A DNA stretch of 64,000 bases, taken from sequence record NC_049850.1, one strand, 5' to 3'. Of the stretch, positions 27,684-62,298 are shown in pieces; position 1 is the first letter of the stretch; each line of letters begins with the position of its first letter. A model generated the notes under the pieces. It did no database searches. It worked only from the letters and a program-made list of their open reading frames with translations, and had not been told where the DNA came from. Position numbers and translations under genes: made by a program.

Positions 27684-28499
27684 ATGTCGGATCAGGTGAA
27701 TGGTGAGTTGGGGGTTGGTGAGTTGGGTGATGAACGCAGTGAATCACTCAAGGGCGAGTTGGGGGCTGGTTGTGGTCTTTATGACTTTTTCGTCGCATTC
27801 AGCAACTGGCTGGAGCGCGGCGAGTCCCAGCAATCTCTCGAACACGGCCTCGGATTCTCGCGCTATTATGGCCTGTGTTCCAATCTCAACAAGTGGCTGC
27901 TTGATCGGGACCATCGACTTTTCGGGACCGACCAACACGGTCAACCGAGGGGCTGCTTATGGTACGCACGCGTCGACGAGTTTCAACGGGCACTCCAAGC
28001 GCTGTTTGCTGATCGCGGGCTGGATCGTGCGACACCGTTTGATGCTGACGAACTGGCGTACGAGCGCGCGGCGCAAGACCATACTCTATACGTCAATCAG
28101 GGACGCCTCTCGTTCATCCGCGAAGCATGTGCCGGACGCACGCTGACCACCAGCCAGATCGAGCGTGCTGTCGACGCGTTCTACATCGATATCGACAAGG
28201 CGGCTCCCCGGATCACGCGGCACACCAAGCGTGAGTTGTTCGAGCCCGTGTACGGCCTGTGCCAGAATTTCGTGTTCTGGCAGCGTGCGCAAGGCGTTGA
28301 GCGATCACGCGTGCGCACGTTCCTGAACCGGGAGCTTACTCGTGAGTTCACGGCCGCTGGTATGGATTCTCTGTACCCGTTCAACGCGGGCCGCGCAGAA
28401 AAGTACAACGCGGAAGAAAACACGTTCCTGAACCCGCGACGCCGCAAGTGGATTCGTGATCGCGCGGCCGTCGCCCTCGTACGTATGGGGGTCAAGTGA
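27684..28499 (+). CDS. Two-repeat protein (GLCxN...PFN...NxxR family)
   Basis: Two internal copies of GLC(S/Q)N...F...(T/Y)PF(D/N)...Y...NxxRxx(F/W)IR. Confidence 0.7.
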   Translation: MSDQVNGELGVGELGDERSESLKGELGAGCGLYDFFVAFSNWLERGESQQSLEHGLGFSRYYGLCSNLNKWLLDRDHRLFGTDQHGQPRGCLWYARVDEFQRALQALFADRGLDRATPFDADELAYERAAQDHTLYVNQGRLSFIREACAGRTLTTSQIERAVDAFYIDIDKAAPRITRHTKRELFEPVYGLCQNFVFWQRAQGVERSRVRTFLNRELTREFTAAGMDSLYPFNAGRAEKYNAEENTFLNPRRRKWIRDRAAVALVRMGVK

Positions 28500-32531: not shown

Positions 32532-33209
32532 AGGTTCGCAAGATCGCGAAGCGGCCCCCGACGTACCTGCGTGTGGGCACCGTGAACATACCGACCGGAT
32601 TCTACGGTGTGACGCAGCGGAAAACTAAGAACGGGGTGAACATCCACCTGATCACGGAGCGGAAGGAATTCATCGACCTGTACGGTCAGCCGGATTTCGA
32701 TACCACGGTCACGGTCACGGATCGTGGAGTCGCGCTGCTGGCCAGCCTCGATTTCCCGAGAGTGGTGCCTTACGCACAGCGGGTGCGCACATGAAGCACA
32801 AAATCCGACACTTTGTGGGGACCGTGGAGCAGCCACCGATTGAGGTGGACACCTCGATCCTCAACGATTCCACATACCAGTGGGCCAAGACGCTGGTGCG
32901 CTGGTACGACGAGATCGGTCACTGGAACAACGATTCTGAAAACTCCAGCCTCTTCAACCTGCTGAAGCAGGAGATCAAGGAATACGAGGCTCGGCAATGA
33001 ACAGATACGACAGTTTCCCCGAAATCCACCACCACGACGCGGCGGACCTAGCACGCGATCTCGTGAAGTGGATCGAGGCATCGGGTCCCGAATTGGGCTC
33101 TCCCCTTCTGGACTTCTGCTACCGTCTGGAAGACGAGATCACGGCATTCCAAGACCGTATCATTGCGGCAGACCGCGAAGCGTATTATCAGCACTATACG
33201 CAGAAGTAG
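32528..33209 (+). CDS. Three small hypothetical proteins (32528-32794, 32791-33000, 32997-33209)
   Basis: ATGA overlaps. Confidence 0.7.
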
Positions 33210-33238
33210 TTGACAAGTCCCGTTCAGTTGAATAAACT
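33210..33238 (+). promoter_or_regulatory. sigma70-type promoter
   Basis: TTGACA-N17-TAAACT. Confidence 0.85.
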
Positions 33239-33268
33239 GGCGGGACTTTATCTTTTCTGGGGCGCAAA

Positions 33269-34111
33269 ATGCAGACCAAACAGATCAACAAGCTGGAAGT
33301 CCTGAAGAACGTCATCAAATGCGACTCGAACGCCGAGGGCTGGGTCGATGTCTACAAGATGGCGGAAAAGCTGGAACTCTACAGCTTCCACGGGGGCCCG
33401 GACGACGCGCAAACCCGTCTCCGTGTGTATGCGGTCACCGAATGGCGTTGCACCGACACGCACGTGGGTCTCAGCGCCATCTACTTCGACGGCAAGCTCG
33501 TTGGCTGTATCGAACAGTGGTCGCGTAAGGGTGACGTGAACTACTCGTGGGTGAGTACCGAGGCCGCGATGGCGGTCCGCAACTTTCTGGCCGAGGGCAT
33601 GGAATTCCAGTTCCCGACCATCGGAGCCGACGACACTGTGGATTCGCGCTATCGCGTGAACTACCGTGATCAGATTCTGTGCGTCAACGGTTGGTACGCC
33701 GATAAACCGGTCACCTACGTCAAGGAGCCGCGCGCTCGGGCAGACGGGAAGTATCTGGCGTTCGACGCCGATTACGACTGCGTTATCCTGATCGCGCACG
33801 AGGACGGCACCACCGAACGGATTCCGGTGTCCGAGTTCTACATGGACCTGCACGTTCCGAAGCACGTGGTCGACGATCTGTTGACAGACGCCGAATAAGC
33901 GCGTACGATACGCCCATCTGATCACGGGAGGCCCATCATGAAGTACTTCTGGATTGCGGTTGTCGCGTTTCTAGTCTGCGACGCCTACCTGTACACCGAG
34001 AACGGTGAGTCGTATTTCTGGGGCAACCAACACCGTATCGAACGCCTTTTCAAACACGTGGCTCTCAGCCTCGGCACCTACCACGCTCAGGAGGATCAAG
34101 AAGATGAATAA
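33269..34111 (+). CDS. Hypothetical protein (33269-33898) and small TM protein (33938-34111, not in track)
   Basis: Second ORF begins MKYFWIAVVAFLVC...; GGAGG RBS. Confidence 0.65.
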
Positions 34112-35138
34112 ATACGCAGCGGAGTTCTTCGGCAAGTTTCACTACGCGGTCACGGTCGGCTACGACAGGGCCGATGGTGGCCCGTTCCAGTTCAACGATG
34201 GCATTTGCGAGAACTTCAGCGTGTACCTGCGTCGCGTTGGCGTCCCGGGCATCATCAAGGATGCGTATATGCGCGCCCTCAAGGACGCCTTCCAGTTCAA
34301 CGGACAGGACCGCGTGTTCCCGTTCAATCCGGGACGCATGGCCGAGTACAGTGAGGAAGTGCTCACGAACAAGGTCTACAAGAACGAGGAACGTCTTGCG
34401 TTCCTGCGCAACATGGTCAACGACTACGATCTGGTCGAACATCGCGTGGTTCCCAACCTGCTTGATCATTACTTCCGCGAACTGGACACGTGGCTGGACG
34501 TTAGCGCCGAAGGGCAGCGTCGGTTCCGAAACTACACCGGCATCTGCACGAACGTCGAGCACTGGCTCCAGTCCCATGGCGTGGACGATTTCGCACTCAC
34601 CTGTAACATGCGAAACCAGTTGACCCAAGAGTTCCAGATCGCGCTGAGCGCTCGTGACGAAGGTGTGTACGATGGCTACCCGTTCAACGCCAACGTCGGC
34701 CACTACCTGAAGGAAGCTCAGGCGTGCACGATCTACGACAACGCAGAGCGCGTAGCCTACATCCGTCGCCGGGCTGCACGTGCCTATCTGAACACGAGCA
34801 CCATCGACGCGTTCCTGACGGAATTCCGTCAGTGGTTCACGAACGGGCGCGCTGCCGACAACACGTTCTCGTCTGCGGCTGCTGTCTGTTCGAACCTGAC
34901 GCGGTGGATGCGGAGCACCGGAGCCGACGACTTCGCGTGCACGTGGGCACAGAAGAACCTCATGGAAAAATTCGTGCGCATGGGGCTTCACGCGCGATTC
35001 CCGTTCAACGAGCGCGCGATGGAATACGCAGACGAGCGTGACGCCGGAACGTTTTACAAAAACCCCAAGCGCTGTGCTTGGATCGAAAAGATGGGAATCA
35101 TTTCACATGCAGAACTCTGCAAGCAGTTCGGGGAATAA
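34104..35138 (+). CDS. Three-repeat protein (GICxN...PFN...NxxR family)
   Basis: Three copies: GICEN/GICTN/AVCSN ... FPFN/YPFN/FPFN ... YKNEER/YDNAER/YKNPKR. Confidence 0.8.
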   Translation: MNKYAAEFFGKFHYAVTVGYDRADGGPFQFNDGICENFSVYLRRVGVPGIIKDAYMRALKDAFQFNGQDRVFPFNPGRMAEYSEEVLTNKVYKNEERLAFLRNMVNDYDLVEHRVVPNLLDHYFRELDTWLDVSAEGQRRFRNYTGICTNVEHWLQSHGVDDFALTCNMRNQLTQEFQIALSARDEGVYDGYPFNANVGHYLKEAQACTIYDNAERVAYIRRRAARAYLNTSTIDAFLTEFRQWFTNGRAADNTFSSAAAVCSNLTRWMRSTGADDFACTWAQKNLMEKFVRMGLHARFPFNERAMEYADERDAGTFYKNPKRCAWIEKMGIISHAELCKQFGE

Positions 35139-35274
35139 GCTTGACGACCCGAAGATCGAGATCGTACGCCAATGCATCGAGCGTGCGGTCGTCGAAGCCG
35201 CTGATGGCGGCGATCTGTGGCTCACGACTTTCTTGGCCGCCGAGAAAATCGTGGACATGGTAAAGAGTAGTTGA
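35107..35274 (+). CDS. Hypothetical protein
   Basis: Short ORF; start uncertain. Confidence 0.4.
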   Translation: MQNSASSSGNKLDDPKIEIVRQCIERAVVEAADGGDLWLTTFLAAEKIVDMVKSS

Positions 35275-35299
35275 CGTAACGTCGGGGGCACTATACAGT
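35271..35299 (+). promoter_or_regulatory. sigma70-type promoter
   Basis: TTGACG-N17-TACAGT. Confidence 0.7.
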
Positions 35300-35329
35300 G
35301 CCCCTTCCAACAAGTGACTGGAGGTGTTA

Positions 35330-35536
35330 ATGAACAACGTAGCGTCCCGCATTCTCGGCATCCTGAGCACCGAACTCGATCTCGAACCCGAGCACCTGAG
35401 CGTCGACCATTCGTTCCATTTTTCGGAATTCGAAACCGCATTGGACGACGAGTTCGATCTTCTGTCTGGTGCCGTCGTCTACGAATTCATGTCCGTGCGT
35501 GACATGGCATCGCGCATCGAGCGAGTTCTGGCGTGA
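35330..35536 (+). CDS. Acyl-carrier-protein-like protein lacking the DSL loop
   Basis: SRILGILSTELDLEPEHLSVDHSF / EFETALDDEFD / SVRDMASRI align to AcpP helices I, II and IV. Confidence 0.65.
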   Translation: MNNVASRILGILSTELDLEPEHLSVDHSFHFSEFETALDDEFDLLSGAVVYEFMSVRDMASRIERVLA

Positions 35537-35901
35537 CGCATTTCACCCTTCACCAACGCGAAATCGTTGAGCGTGTATTGTCCCGACTGGAACAGGCGGC
35601 AGAGGACCCGGTGGACGGTGCTCATCAGTACCTGTGCTTGCACATAGGCAGCATCGGGCGCATGCTCAGCCACTCCAAAACACGCTATTTCTTCCACAAC
35701 CTGTTCGGGCGCGACACCCCGTACACGAAGGCGGCGCAAGCCCTGATCGAGCAGATCGCACAAGCACTCGATGGCAAGCGCGGCAACACGCTTCAGGGCT
35801 GGGTCAGCGTGCGTACCGGCTACATTCCGAACGCCGATGTCATGAACGCGGCTCGTGATGCGTGGCTTCATCGCGCACTCGAAATCGGGTATTTCGGATG
35901 A
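35533..35901 (+). CDS. Array-family paralogue (outlier 1)
   Basis: QYLCLHI...QIAQALDG...TLQGWV...AARDAWLHRAL. Confidence 0.7.
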   Translation: MTHFTLHQREIVERVLSRLEQAAEDPVDGAHQYLCLHIGSIGRMLSHSKTRYFFHNLFGRDTPYTKAAQALIEQIAQALDGKRGNTLQGWVSVRTGYIPNADVMNAARDAWLHRALEIGYFG

Positions 35902-36302
35902 ATTCGTTGCTCAAAATGCTAAAGCGCGTATTTACGCGCGGTGCCGCTGTCAATGGGGTTGACACGCGGCTGAGTCCGAAACAGATGGAGATCATGGTGC
36001 TGGTATGCGCCGAGATCAATTATCGCAACCCCGAGCACCAGCAGTTTATCTGTAGCGCGGTAACGCGCGCTGCCGAAGACCTAGATGCCTGTACGTGGTT
36101 CGGGCTGTCTCGTAGCTACCGACGCGCCGCAATCGGCATCCAGTTCCTGATAGACAGGGCCCTCAACAGCGGTGCACTCGGTCGTTGGATTTTCTATGAC
36201 ATGGGCGCACGTGCTATCGACTCCAAGAACGTGACCGCCGCCGTCAACCAGTGTCGGGCCGGTTGGCTCGAAACCATAATCGCGCGAGGACGCATCGAAT
36301 GA
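35898..36302 (+). CDS. Array-family paralogue (outlier 2)
   Basis: QFICSAV...LIDRALNSGALGRWI...CRAGWLETII. Confidence 0.7.
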   Translation: MNSLLKMLKRVFTRGAAVNGVDTRLSPKQMEIMVLVCAEINYRNPEHQQFICSAVTRAAEDLDACTWFGLSRSYRRAAIGIQFLIDRALNSGALGRWIFYDMGARAIDSKNVTAAVNQCRAGWLETIIARGRIE

Positions 36303-36514
36303 AGAAATATGTGGGAATTGCACTGATCTTGGGACTGATGCTTGCCGCGCTTGCGGCTGTCGCAAACCCGACCTCAGTAGTGATCGAAACGCGGTTCGGC
36401 TACATCCGCATCTACGACGTGTTGACCCCGGCAGGTCACCAGTGTACGATTGCGTCCTCTGAAGCTGACTCCAACAGTGCGGGTCGCGCATTGGCCATGC
36501 AGTGCTACAAATAA
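36299..36514 (+). CDS. Small secreted/membrane protein
   Basis: Signal-peptide-like N-terminus MKKYVGIALILGLMLAALAAVA. Confidence 0.6.
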   Translation: MKKYVGIALILGLMLAALAAVANPTSVVIETRFGYIRIYDVLTPAGHQCTIASSEADSNSAGRALAMQCYK

Positions 36515-36522
36515 GGAGAATC

Positions 36523-36774
36523 ATGAAGAAGCTCGTTCTGGCGGTGGCGCTCGTCGCTGCCCTCACTGGGTGCACGCGCCCGGATCAAGCACGTCGGCTG
36601 CTGACCCAACAGGGCTACACGCAGATCGAAATCACGGGCTACGCACCGTTCGCGTGCTCGAAAGACGACACGTTCCACACGGAGTTCCGTGCTGTATCGG
36701 CAGCAGGCCATCAGGTACAAGGCGTTGTCTGTTCAGCCTTGCTCAAAGGCGCAACTATTCGGCTGGAGGATTAA
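36523..36774 (+). CDS. Phage lipoprotein
   Basis: Lipobox LTG-C; GYTQIEITGY..FACSKDD...F.A...V.GVVC pattern common in large phages. Confidence 0.75.
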   Translation: MKKLVLAVALVAALTGCTRPDQARRLLTQQGYTQIEITGYAPFACSKDDTFHTEFRAVSAAGHQVQGVVCSALLKGATIRLED

Positions 36775-37158
36775 ATGCGTGCAACTCATGCAAAGCTTGA
36801 AGTCACGGGAGACCGCAGCGCCCTTATCACGGCCGACATCCTAGCGCGCTTTATCGGCAGCGAAATTACGTATCTCGCGGACTTGGTGGACGACACGCAA
36901 CCCCTGCGAGTCGTAAACCTGCGCTTCCGTGGTGATCTCGCAGACCTGCACGGTGAAAAGATCATGCTGCCGTTCGCGGATGCAGTTCGCGGCGGCAAGG
37001 CTCTCGGGCTGCTCATCAAGCGCATCAACTGCGCGACGGCGCAAGTGGGCTATGCAGCACACAGTTTGGTTGATCAGTATGATGGTGCAACCGTGGACAC
37101 CGATGCGGAAACCGGGAAGATCGTGGTGACCGTACGACTTCAAAGGAGCCGAGCATGA
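36775..37158 (+). CDS. Hypothetical protein
   Basis: GGAGG RBS. Confidence 0.65.
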   Translation: MRATHAKLEVTGDRSALITADILARFIGSEITYLADLVDDTQPLRVVNLRFRGDLADLHGEKIMLPFADAVRGGKALGLLIKRINCATAQVGYAAHSLVDQYDGATVDTDAETGKIVVTVRLQRSRA

Positions 37159-37688
37159 CGCCACGACAACGCGAAAACGCGCGGCTCGCAATCGATCAGG
37201 GCAATCGCTACCCGCCCGACAGCCTGCAAACCGCTCACTGGACGCTGGACGCGGCTCGCGGTATCATCCACGATCTGAGCGACCGTGGCTCGTTCGATGA
37301 CGCGCTGGACAAGTGCGATCAGGCGGTTCTCGACGAAATCACGGTCGCGATCCAGAACATCATCCGGGTCGCGCACGCCTCTGTTAGCGAGCACGCGGAT
37401 CAGCCGCCCTCAGCCACCGATGCGGCCATCGCGCTGGCGCATGAAGCCCAGTCGGCCGTCACCTCGATCTACGCTACGCATTTCGGTATCGGTGACGTGC
37501 AGTGGCATGAGGACATCGAGCGCGAAACTGGGCTGGACGAGCACGACCGTCAGGAATTGCAGGAGGCACTGGAACAGCGTTTCAGCGCCGTGTTCGACGA
37601 GCGCGAATTCGAGGCGTGCCGCACGGCCAGCGCTCTCGTCGCCTTTATCGTCAAGAACCTGTTGCCGTTCGAGGTCGACCGTGGATGA
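37155..37688 (+). CDS. Two-domain protein with C-terminal ACP-like domain (Ser position occupied by Glu)
   Basis: ETGLDEHDRQELQEALEQRF...EFEACRTASALVAFI vs AcpP [20 protein letters not shown]...EAEKITTVQAAIDYI. Confidence 0.7.
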   Translation: MTPRQRENARLAIDQGNRYPPDSLQTAHWTLDAARGIIHDLSDRGSFDDALDKCDQAVLDEITVAIQNIIRVAHASVSEHADQPPSATDAAIALAHEAQSAVTSIYATHFGIGDVQWHEDIERETGLDEHDRQELQEALEQRFSAVFDEREFEACRTASALVAFIVKNLLPFEVDRG

Positions 37689-39039: not shown

Positions 39040-39068
39040 TTGACGCGACACAAAACGGACCCTATACT
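39040..39068 (+). promoter_or_regulatory. sigma70-type promoter
   Basis: TTGACG-N17-TATACT. Confidence 0.85.
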
Positions 39069-39107
39069 GGGTCCGTTGTCATTTCTAGACCCAGAAAGGA
39101 GATTTCG

Positions 39108-61682: not shown

Positions 61683-62298
61683 TTACGCGGTTTTGAGAAG
61701 TTTTTCACGGATACGTTGAGCGAACGCGTGTTGGATCACCTGTGCCTTGCTCATTTCGAGGCTGGTATCCCCGATTTCCGCGTCCATCAGACGAAGGATA
61801 CGGAGAATGACACGGTGCTCCAGTTCACGTGTGGTCGCGATGTCGGGCTGGACCTCGGCCACGCTTAGCAGCCACTGGGCGAACGCGTACACCTCGTCAT
61901 CGTCGGCCACGATCTTGAACTGGGAATACGCCATGTTCGAAAGCAGGTTAGCCGTATCGTAGCTGTCGACGCCCCGGATTTTCACCTCATTCGTCAGCAT
62001 CGGCAATCCTGAAAACGAATTCGGTCTTGACACTGGGACGCAGGATCACGTCCGCTGCGTACACGATGTCGCCTACATGTCCTTCACGCAGGTACTGCAC
62101 GCTGTCAATCAGCTTGATCGCGGCCACGATTTCGCGGTCTCCGGATTCGCCCTCCGAAAACAGGGCCGCCGAGCCCAAATATGTAGTCCAGTACGGACTG
62201 CCGTGATCGGTGGCGTACGCGAAATACAAGAGGCGGCCGTTTTGCTGCTGACACACGAGCATGCGTTTCAGCGGCGGTTGCTTGAATTCAATTGGCAC
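61683..62298 (-). CDS. Two hypothetical proteins (61683-62000, 61987-62298)
   Basis: Overlapping ORFs. Confidence 0.6.

Follow-up and report, generated by a model that had tools for sequence, protein, structure and literature searches.

The small gene gp341 of the Burkholderia jumbo phage BcepSaruman encodes a protein that is very probably related to, or at least closely patterned on, the carrier-protein family, since independent profiles of fatty acid synthase (FAS)/phage type and polyketide synthase (PKS) type, as well as an iterated profile, all recover it. As aligned to acyl carrier protein (ACP), its sequence lacks the segment bearing the serine that receives phosphopantetheine. The gene lies in a 64,000-nucleotide (nt) stretch of DNA, referred to here as the window, which covers positions 186001 to 250000 of the BcepSaruman record (MK552140.1, 263,735 bp; genus Sarumanvirus; host B. 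cenocepacia); a window coordinate equals the record coordinate minus 186000. The open reading frame (ORF) that the original prediction had singled out as an ACP mimic is present on the plus strand at 35330 to 35536 and matches the annotated gene BcepSaruman_341 (QBX06754.1, 68 codons), whose product is listed as "hypothetical protein." Translation starts at the ATG at 35330, with GGAGG located 5 nt upstream (35320 to 35324); an alternative GTG at 35324, chosen by the ORF lister, overlaps this ribosome-binding site. The protein is acidic, with 14 Asp and Glu versus 4 Lys and Arg among its 68 amino acids and a net charge of about -10. The gene and the proposed equivalents of the ACP segments are laid out as follows.

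35320 to 35324, plus strand: Shine-Dalgarno sequence GGAGG, 5 nt before the gp341 ATG (sequence).
35330 to 35536, plus strand: coding sequence of gp341, 68 amino acids, ACP-like, without the phosphopantetheine-serine segment (ORF, annotation, and ACP-profile matches).
35339 to 35416, plus strand: gp341 residues 4 to 29, putative equivalent of ACP helix I and loop I, ending at Ser28-Phe29 (AcpP S27-F28) (FAS/phage profile, ungapped).
35417 to 35425, plus strand: gp341 residues 30 to 32 (His-Phe-Ser), putative junction at which about 9 residues are missing (AcpP V29-L37, including G-A-D-S-L) (profile gap placement).
35426 to 35458, plus strand: gp341 residues 33 to 43 (EFETALDDEFD), putative equivalent of the acidic recognition helix II (ELVMALEEEFD in ACP) (sequence, per-residue profile scores, and a low-confidence AlphaFold2 helix at residues 31 to 42).
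35492 to 35530, plus strand: gp341 residues 55 to 67, putative equivalent of helix IV, beginning S-V-R-D (ACP consensus T-V-x-D) (PKS-type profile alignment of residues 32 to 66 and AlphaFold2 helix at residues 56 to 67).

The proposed ACP-like character of the sequence was borne out by custom profiles built from sequences whose selection did not involve gp341. The PKS-type profile comprised 16 ACP domains of bacterial polyketide synthases from four plasmids, and the FAS/phage-type profile comprised Escherichia coli AcpP and ten ACPs from phage records; scores were compared to those of 20,000 composition-preserving shuffles of gp341. With the FAS/phage profile, gp341 ranked second among the 620 ORFs of the window (E = 0.006), residues 1 to 30 aligned without a gap, and 14 of the 20,000 shuffles reached its score. 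It also ranked second of 620 with the PKS-type profile, which aligned residues 32 to 66, from helix II to helix IV (86 of 20,000 shuffles reaching the score), and hhalign of gp341 against this profile gave a P value of 0.0034. When a gap-tolerant local alignment was used that assumed no position for the deletion, the gp341 score was reached by 2 to 4 of the 20,000 shuffles for the FAS profile and by 33 to 260 for the PKS profile, the latter number varying with the gap-open cost. Iterating the FAS profile over the phage's own ORFs, with gp341 excluded, gave 14.0 bits (p = 1.9e-6; 0 of 20,000 shuffles) and an E value of 0.0038 over 3,289 ORF fragments from the whole genome. Finally, removal of the nine columns V-E-D-L-G-A-D-S-L from the FAS profile placed gp341 first in the window, with 23.6 bits, an E value of 1.2e-6, and a 45-residue ungapped alignment, while no shuffle scored above 12.8 bits. 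These nine columns were chosen post hoc, and the result is still significant after a roughly thousand-fold correction for position and length.

The three segments quoted in the original prediction (helix I, helix II, and helix IV) are all found in gp341, collinear with ACPs, and its claim that the serine-bearing segment is missing agrees with the profile alignments and register scores, in which about 9 residues covering G-x-D-S-L are absent. Residues 18 to 29 fit the FAS-type loop I pattern (hydrophobic, x, x, Glu, x, hydrophobic, Ser/Thr, x, x, x, Ser, Phe), and within this ungapped match Ser28-Phe29 corresponds to the Ser-Phe of AcpP (S27-F28). The helix I and loop I blocks score +16.8 and +4.3 bits against the FAS profile, and the best ungapped offset of this region against the PKS-type profile scores +11.1 bits. 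The unmodified iterated profile sets its gap at the same spot as the nine-column removal. Downstream of the gap, per-residue scores in helix II are positive at E33, A37, L38, D39, D40, E41, F42, and D43, and the acidic residues E33, D39, D40, E41, and D43 correspond to AcpP E41, E47, E48, E49, and D51. The acidic recognition helix II is present in gp341, and the G-x-D-S-L serine motif at its N terminus is absent. The alignments confirm that gp341 resembles ACP in sequence and point to an excision that took away the last part of loop I together with the opening turn of helix II, including the phosphopantetheine serine.

These features suggest how the protein might work. The gp341 product would derive from an ACP of which helices I and IV, loop I, and the greater part of the acidic helix II remain, and which has lost the approximately nine residues, the cofactor serine among them, at the end of loop I and in the first turn of helix II. 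Because this segment is absent, it should be unable to take phosphopantetheine or acyl groups and would most likely act by protein-protein binding. The retained helix II surface would then occupy host enzymes that dock ACP, and host lipid and envelope synthesis would be shut down or redirected during infection. To this reading, in which gp341 would be a decoy for host ACP-dependent enzymes that curbs host lipid and envelope synthesis, we assign a probability of roughly 0.4; that the protein folds as ACP does, escapes modification, binds host partners, and affects the host is what we infer. The decoy reading is favored because ACP without its prosthetic group is known to behave in this way: apo-ACP inhibits glycerol-3-phosphate acyltransferase more strongly than holo-ACP does and arrests the growth of E. 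coli (review PMC3896788). A phage ACP has also been predicted to dock host FabZ (PMC13291599). No phosphopantetheinyl transferase, synthase, ligase, or acyltransferase was found among the ten neighbors of gp341 with PHROG and NCBIfam, nor in the genome annotation, and we count the lack of carrier-protein partner enzymes among these neighbors in favor of a binding-type function. SpoT, one of the ACP partners named in the original prediction, is an unlikely target, as it is reported not to bind apo-ACP (PMC3896788).

Several results weigh against the decoy reading. The deletion removes D35 and changes D38, both residues of the ACP docking surface, and may also disturb the fold. Curated resources gave no support: NCBIfam returned no family for gp341 at an E value of ≤10, PHROG returned only an unrelated family (E = 0.34) and no match to its ACP family, PHROG 5934, and a phmmer search of PDB sequences returned nothing at an E value of ≤10. 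Homologues are limited to the two Sarumanvirus copies in a word-indexed search of 5.8 billion proteins, in tblastn over 50,697 phage records, and in IMG/VR, and a scan of GTDB genomes with alignment added none, so that no homologues outside these two phages show which residues matter. An exhaustive phmmer search of 1.84 billion representatives gave three non-self matches. The best of these, P0002, is a metagenomic polyketide synthase of 1,147 amino acids with four tandem PF00550 domains (Pfam); its alignment spans gp341 residues 8 to 68 at 37 to 39% identity and, as the sole full-length non-self match among these representatives, speaks for the ACP relationship. Its E value of 2.4e-10 was rejected as proof of homology, because the four repeats, nearly identical to one another, inflate it; the best of them, taken singly, scores 27.1 bits (E = 0.5). 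The other two matches, P0003 and P0004, were discarded as unrelated repeat proteins.

Structure prediction counts on the same side. AlphaFold2 modeled gp341 with low confidence, both without an alignment (predicted local distance difference test [pLDDT] of 63.6) and with a five-sequence alignment (pLDDT of 55.0; predicted template modeling [pTM] score of 0.35). The helices of the latter model, at residues 2 to 15, 31 to 42, and 56 to 67, are at the expected sites of helix I, a shortened helix II, and helix IV. The Foldseek comparison proposed alongside the original prediction could be made only with these low-confidence models (pLDDT, 55.0 to 63.6); it returned no significant match in the PDB (best E = 0.84; template modeling [TM] scores of 0.44 to 0.48) and none in the viral structure library BFVD. 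Ten of the 14 entries in the top PDB list contain an ACP or peptidyl carrier protein (PCP) chain, which weighs little because the supplied alignment itself contained ACP domains.

The original prediction counted gp341 among four ACP-like domains of the window, all of them without the serine. Two of these, gp341 and gp347, are supported, gp363 is ambiguous, and a fourth is unsupported. The two further candidates in the window are the following.

37446 to 37661, plus strand: C-terminal ACP-like domain of gp347, residues 98 to 169, with Glu129 (37539 to 37541) in the serine column (PHROG, PDB, and FAS/phage profile).
42195 to 42599, plus strand: gp363, possible third ACP-like domain, ambiguous, with an insert of about 15 residues at the D-S-L position (carrier profiles, E = 0.0012 and 4.9e-5 over window ORFs, in two pieces).

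The C-terminal domain encoded by gp347 (37155 to 37688) is clearly homologous to ACP: it matches PHROG 5934, "acyl carrier protein" (E = 1.2e-4), and the FAS/phage profile (E = 8e-7); ACP chains are its best PDB matches (E = 1.6e-4) and account for 20 of 21. Its serine region reads G-L-D-E-H-D. The arrangement of gp347, in which an ACP domain comes after an N-terminal extension, is also that of the ACP of Burkholderia jumbo phage BCSR5, whose serine is intact. The nature of gp363 is left ambiguous because, among PDB sequences, it matches a NuoC/NDUFS3 motif best (complex I subunit; E = 0.027); it has no PHROG match. Outside the window, gp119 (record MK552140.1, 69003 to 69254, minus strand; L024:19003-19254) is annotated as "acyl carrier protein-like protein," matches PHROG 5934 (E = 9.8e-4), and has Asp in the serine column (F-D-D-L-D versus A-D-S-L-D). 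Also outside it, gp422 (record MK552140.1, 251736 to 253589, minus strand; L004:16737-18590; 617 amino acids; PHROG 5934, E = 4e-5) contains ACP-like domains in tandem, three of them strong and two weak; the strong ones have Asp, His, and Ser in the serine column, and the last domain alone keeps G-W-D-S-M-D. The predicted lack of the serine holds within the window, but not for this last domain; several domains of the phage do lack it, with Glu in gp347, Asp in gp119, and Asp or His in gp422. Because the other ACP-like domains have their serine replaced, the sequences argue for repeated use of a putatively cofactor-free ACP fold in this phage. To call these genes a system, as had been suggested, is too strong, because they are dispersed over the genome at record positions 69, 221, 223, and 252 kb; no recognizable transferase, synthase, or acyltransferase is found among the neighbors.

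Some further comparisons concern these domains. In sister phage BcepSauron, the gp347 ortholog, gp350 (L002:4425-5246), has an extra C-terminal module of about 96 residues, in which a serine (I-N-S-A-D) falls in the serine column in one small MAFFT alignment; carrier profiles did not confirm it (3.6 bits). BLASTP gave no alignment of gp341 with gp347 or with the gp350 module, jackhmmer within the window found nothing, and large protein searches with the gp347 domain and with one P0002 repeat gave nothing useful. Among other ORFs that match carrier profiles weakly, the ORF at 27684 to 28499 and gp339 (34104 to 35138) were rejected as PHROG 2510 repeats, and gp413 (61683 to 62000, minus strand), which contains G-V-D-S-Y-D, was rejected for having no ACP match in the PDB. 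The gp339 product, with three copies, and the product of 27684 to 28499, with two, consist of repeats of one unknown phage domain (PHROG 2510/2176/6418) and are paralogues within the window. In a family of Vibrio phage proteins (277E43-1 P0098, L019:395-928; further members in L022 and L023), a C-terminal extension is joined to an N-terminal ACP domain; D-S-L-D is intact in two members, and another reads D-N-L-D, its serine lost by a point change.

This repertoire bears on the best-surviving alternative, which we regard as possible although clearly less probable than a host decoy, namely that gp341 is ACP-derived but serves inside the phage, as an adaptor or subunit for phage proteins such as gp422 or the products of its own operon. 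At least four phage genes carry ACP-like domains, most without the serine, gp347 and gp422 fuse such domains to other regions, and gp341 is translationally coupled to small genes of no known function, all of which would suit an adaptor. However, no partner was identified, the genes are scattered (69, 221, 223, and 252 kb), and the retained helix II is the very surface that host enzymes recognize.

A second alternative, which we consider unlikely, holds that the ACP resemblance arose by chance or convergence and that gp341, unrelated to ACP, is an acidic, helical early protein, such as a nucleic acid mimic or an inhibitor of a host defense or DNA-binding protein. A net charge of about -10 in 68 residues is like that of many phage inhibitor proteins, curated libraries see no ACP in gp341, the structure models are poor, and the best match to a single database domain has an E value of 0.5. 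Used alone as a query, E. coli AcpP places gp341 only sixth among the 620 window ORFs (E = 4.7); the resemblance to AcpP is really in the sequence, yet it does not rise above chance in simple searches. On the other hand, the resemblance is collinear over all four structural segments and is found with two profiles from separate sequence sets, no shuffle among 20,000 matches the iterated score, and gp341 ranks first or second of 620 ORFs in every carrier-profile search. As for known acidic inhibitors such as Ocr and ArdA, their composition fits gp341, but no PHROG match and, from a poor model, no significant Foldseek match among viral or PDB structures was obtained.

Could gp341 still be a working carrier, phosphopantetheinylated on Ser28 or Ser32 by a promiscuous host transferase? 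The 14-residue spacing between Ser28 and Phe42 equals that between Ser36 and Phe50 of AcpP, Ser28 falls in the serine column of small MAFFT alignments, and short helical D-S-L peptides suffice for Sfp-type enzymes. It was on this spacing and these alignments that we considered Ser28 as the attachment serine, with the register of the original prediction in error. This register was rejected on the profile emission scores and the ungapped loop I match to Ser-Phe. Residues 24 to 29 score +4.3 bits in the predicted register versus -3.2 bits with Ser28 as the site for the FAS profile, and +5.15 versus -8.8 bits for the PKS profile, so that the Ser28 register is worse by 7.5 bits (FAS type) and 14 bits (PKS type), and both profiles favor Ser28-Phe29 as the Ser-Phe of loop I. 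In addition, gp341 lacks the conserved Gly and Asp that precede the serine, and no partner enzymes are encoded nearby. We regard a working carrier as very unlikely.

Comparison with BcepSauron shows that gp341 is a real gene under purifying selection and no decaying remnant. The protein is 100% identical in the two phages, and all five differences in its 207 nt are synonymous, with no nonsynonymous change, which is improbable under neutrality: the synonymous share of single-base changes in gp341 is 23 to 28%, giving a probability of about 0.0007 to 0.0016 for 5 of 5. At the DNA level, gp341 is 97.6% identical, compared to about 94% for the aligned block at 33001 to 35536, which includes gp341. 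That the gene is a functionless remnant of a phage ACP gene is most improbable, for although an internal loss of the functional motif in an orphan of one phage genus could look like decay, the frame is intact, the ribosome-binding site is strong, the differences are exclusively synonymous, and conservation is higher in the gene than around it.

Upstream of gp341, two overlapping elements were noted.

35271 to 35299, plus strand: σ70-like promoter match, TTGACG-17 nt-TACAGT (TATAGT in BcepSauron), 9 of 12 consensus matches.
35285 to 35304, plus strand: hairpin GGGGCACT-ATAC-AGTGCCCC, overlapping the -10 hexamer; pairing is kept in BcepSauron through compensatory G>C and C>G changes.

The original prediction had placed gp341 as the first gene after a σ70 promoter. 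It is indeed the first gene after the match at 35271 to 35299, but this site is a consensus match only and overlaps the conserved hairpin; its -35 hexamer shares nucleotides with the gp340 stop codon. A second hairpin, at 39054 to 39077, resembles the first in being intergenic, in its TATAC-type loop, in its equal distance after a TTGACG, and in its overlap with a -10-like hexamer. Across the genome, just two copies of this promoter-hairpin motif with perfect stems were found (35285 to 35304 and 39054 to 39077).

Downstream of gp341 follows a run of small, tightly packed genes with overlapping start and stop codons, which adjoins replication genes. The ten neighbor genes have no recognizable function in PHROG or NCBIfam. 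The sister phages are mosaic right after gp341 (window 35533 to 36302 versus BcepSauron L002:2537-3572): BcepSauron has an extra gene between its gp341 and gp342 orthologs and a different gene at the position of gp343. In the same operon as gp341, gp344 (36299 to 36514) and gp345 (36523 to 36774) encode small proteins with signal-peptide-like N termini. The latter has a lipobox, L-T-G-C, and matches PHROG 902, with a weak match to Cor-type superinfection exclusion proteins. Elsewhere in the genome, outside the window, gp436 (record MK552140.1, 259771 to 260307) is annotated as a putative guanosine pyrophosphohydrolase, through which the phage may disturb (p)ppGpp signaling by a route of its own.

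Several known proteins resemble gp341 in part. AcpP (PF00550) is likewise small and strongly acidic; its helix I is collinear with that of gp341, and the likeness extends to loop I (h-x-x-E-x-h-[ST]-x-x-x-S-F), helix II (E-x-x-x-A-L-[DE]-[DE]-E-F-D), and the start of helix IV ([ST]-V-x-D). In contrast to AcpP, gp341 lacks V29 to L37, with G-x-D-S-L and the modified serine, is unrecognized by curated models, and has no fab-type gene context. Serine-intact ACPs occur in other large phages, including Ralstonia phage phiRSL1, which a recent preprint places as the next relative of the phage group of BcepSaruman. The phage ACPs of PHROG 5934, such as phiRSL1 ORF083 and Burkholderia phage BCSR5 QRE00220, are stand-alone proteins of jumbo phages of related hosts, encoded, like gp341, amid small genes of no known function, and the loop I pattern of gp341 resembles the phage and alphaproteobacterial type. 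However, the phiRSL1/BCSR5 type keeps G-A-D-S-L and is 37 to 63% identical to E. coli AcpP, whereas gp341 is without the motif and misses PHROG 5934. The products of gp347, gp119, and gp422 share with gp341 an ACP-like sequence with a changed serine column (Glu; Asp; Asp or His), but they have a full-length loop, lost the serine by point change, and match PHROG 5934, whereas gp341 appears to have lost the site by deletion. The tandem ACPs of the type I polyketide synthase P0002 resemble gp341 from helix II to helix IV, but they are megasynthase domains carrying L-G-L-D-S-I. As a functional model, apo-ACP is the closest: an ACP body without its prosthetic group that binds a partner enzyme and arrests growth (PMC3896788). 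It differs in being a full-length host protein that can be converted to holo-ACP; gp341 is divergent, would be inconvertible if the deletion is as aligned, and is so far only proposed to inhibit.

Phage ACPs are already known as annotated auxiliary genes, and gp119 carries an ACP-like label. We found no paper in the literature on phage ACP-like proteins without the attachment site and none discussing these genes. New in gp341 is a carrier-protein derivative with the hallmark motif excised, in a phage with several serine-less copies. On a broader and more speculative view, which we hold to be possible but unlikely, Sarumanvirus would have multiplied the ACP fold into a cofactor-free set (at least four genes and at least six domains, with the serine lost by deletion or replaced by Glu, Asp, or His) that jams or rewires the host ACP hub, affecting ACP-dependent enzymes, those for lipid, lipid A, and iron-sulfur (Fe-S) among them.

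There is also a lesson of method in gp341: a gene unseen by curated libraries became recognizable once the profile allowed excision of the family's hallmark motif. If the protein is a mere scaffold, or its resemblance to ACP is due to chance, gp341 simply adds to the orphan genes of jumbo phages. Evidence that it binds host ACP partners would make it more interesting. ACP ranks with the bacterial proteins that have the most partners, and the toxicity of its apo form is established. If gp341 is indeed a decoy for ACP-dependent enzymes, it would be a natural, genetically encoded inhibitor of these enzymes, a new handle on the shutdown of envelope synthesis by large phages, and a compact probe for the interfaces between Burkholderia ACP and its partners, which are antibiotic targets. 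If the broader view of Sarumanvirus is also true, its cofactor-free set of ACP-fold proteins would represent a class of host-takeover factor not yet described.

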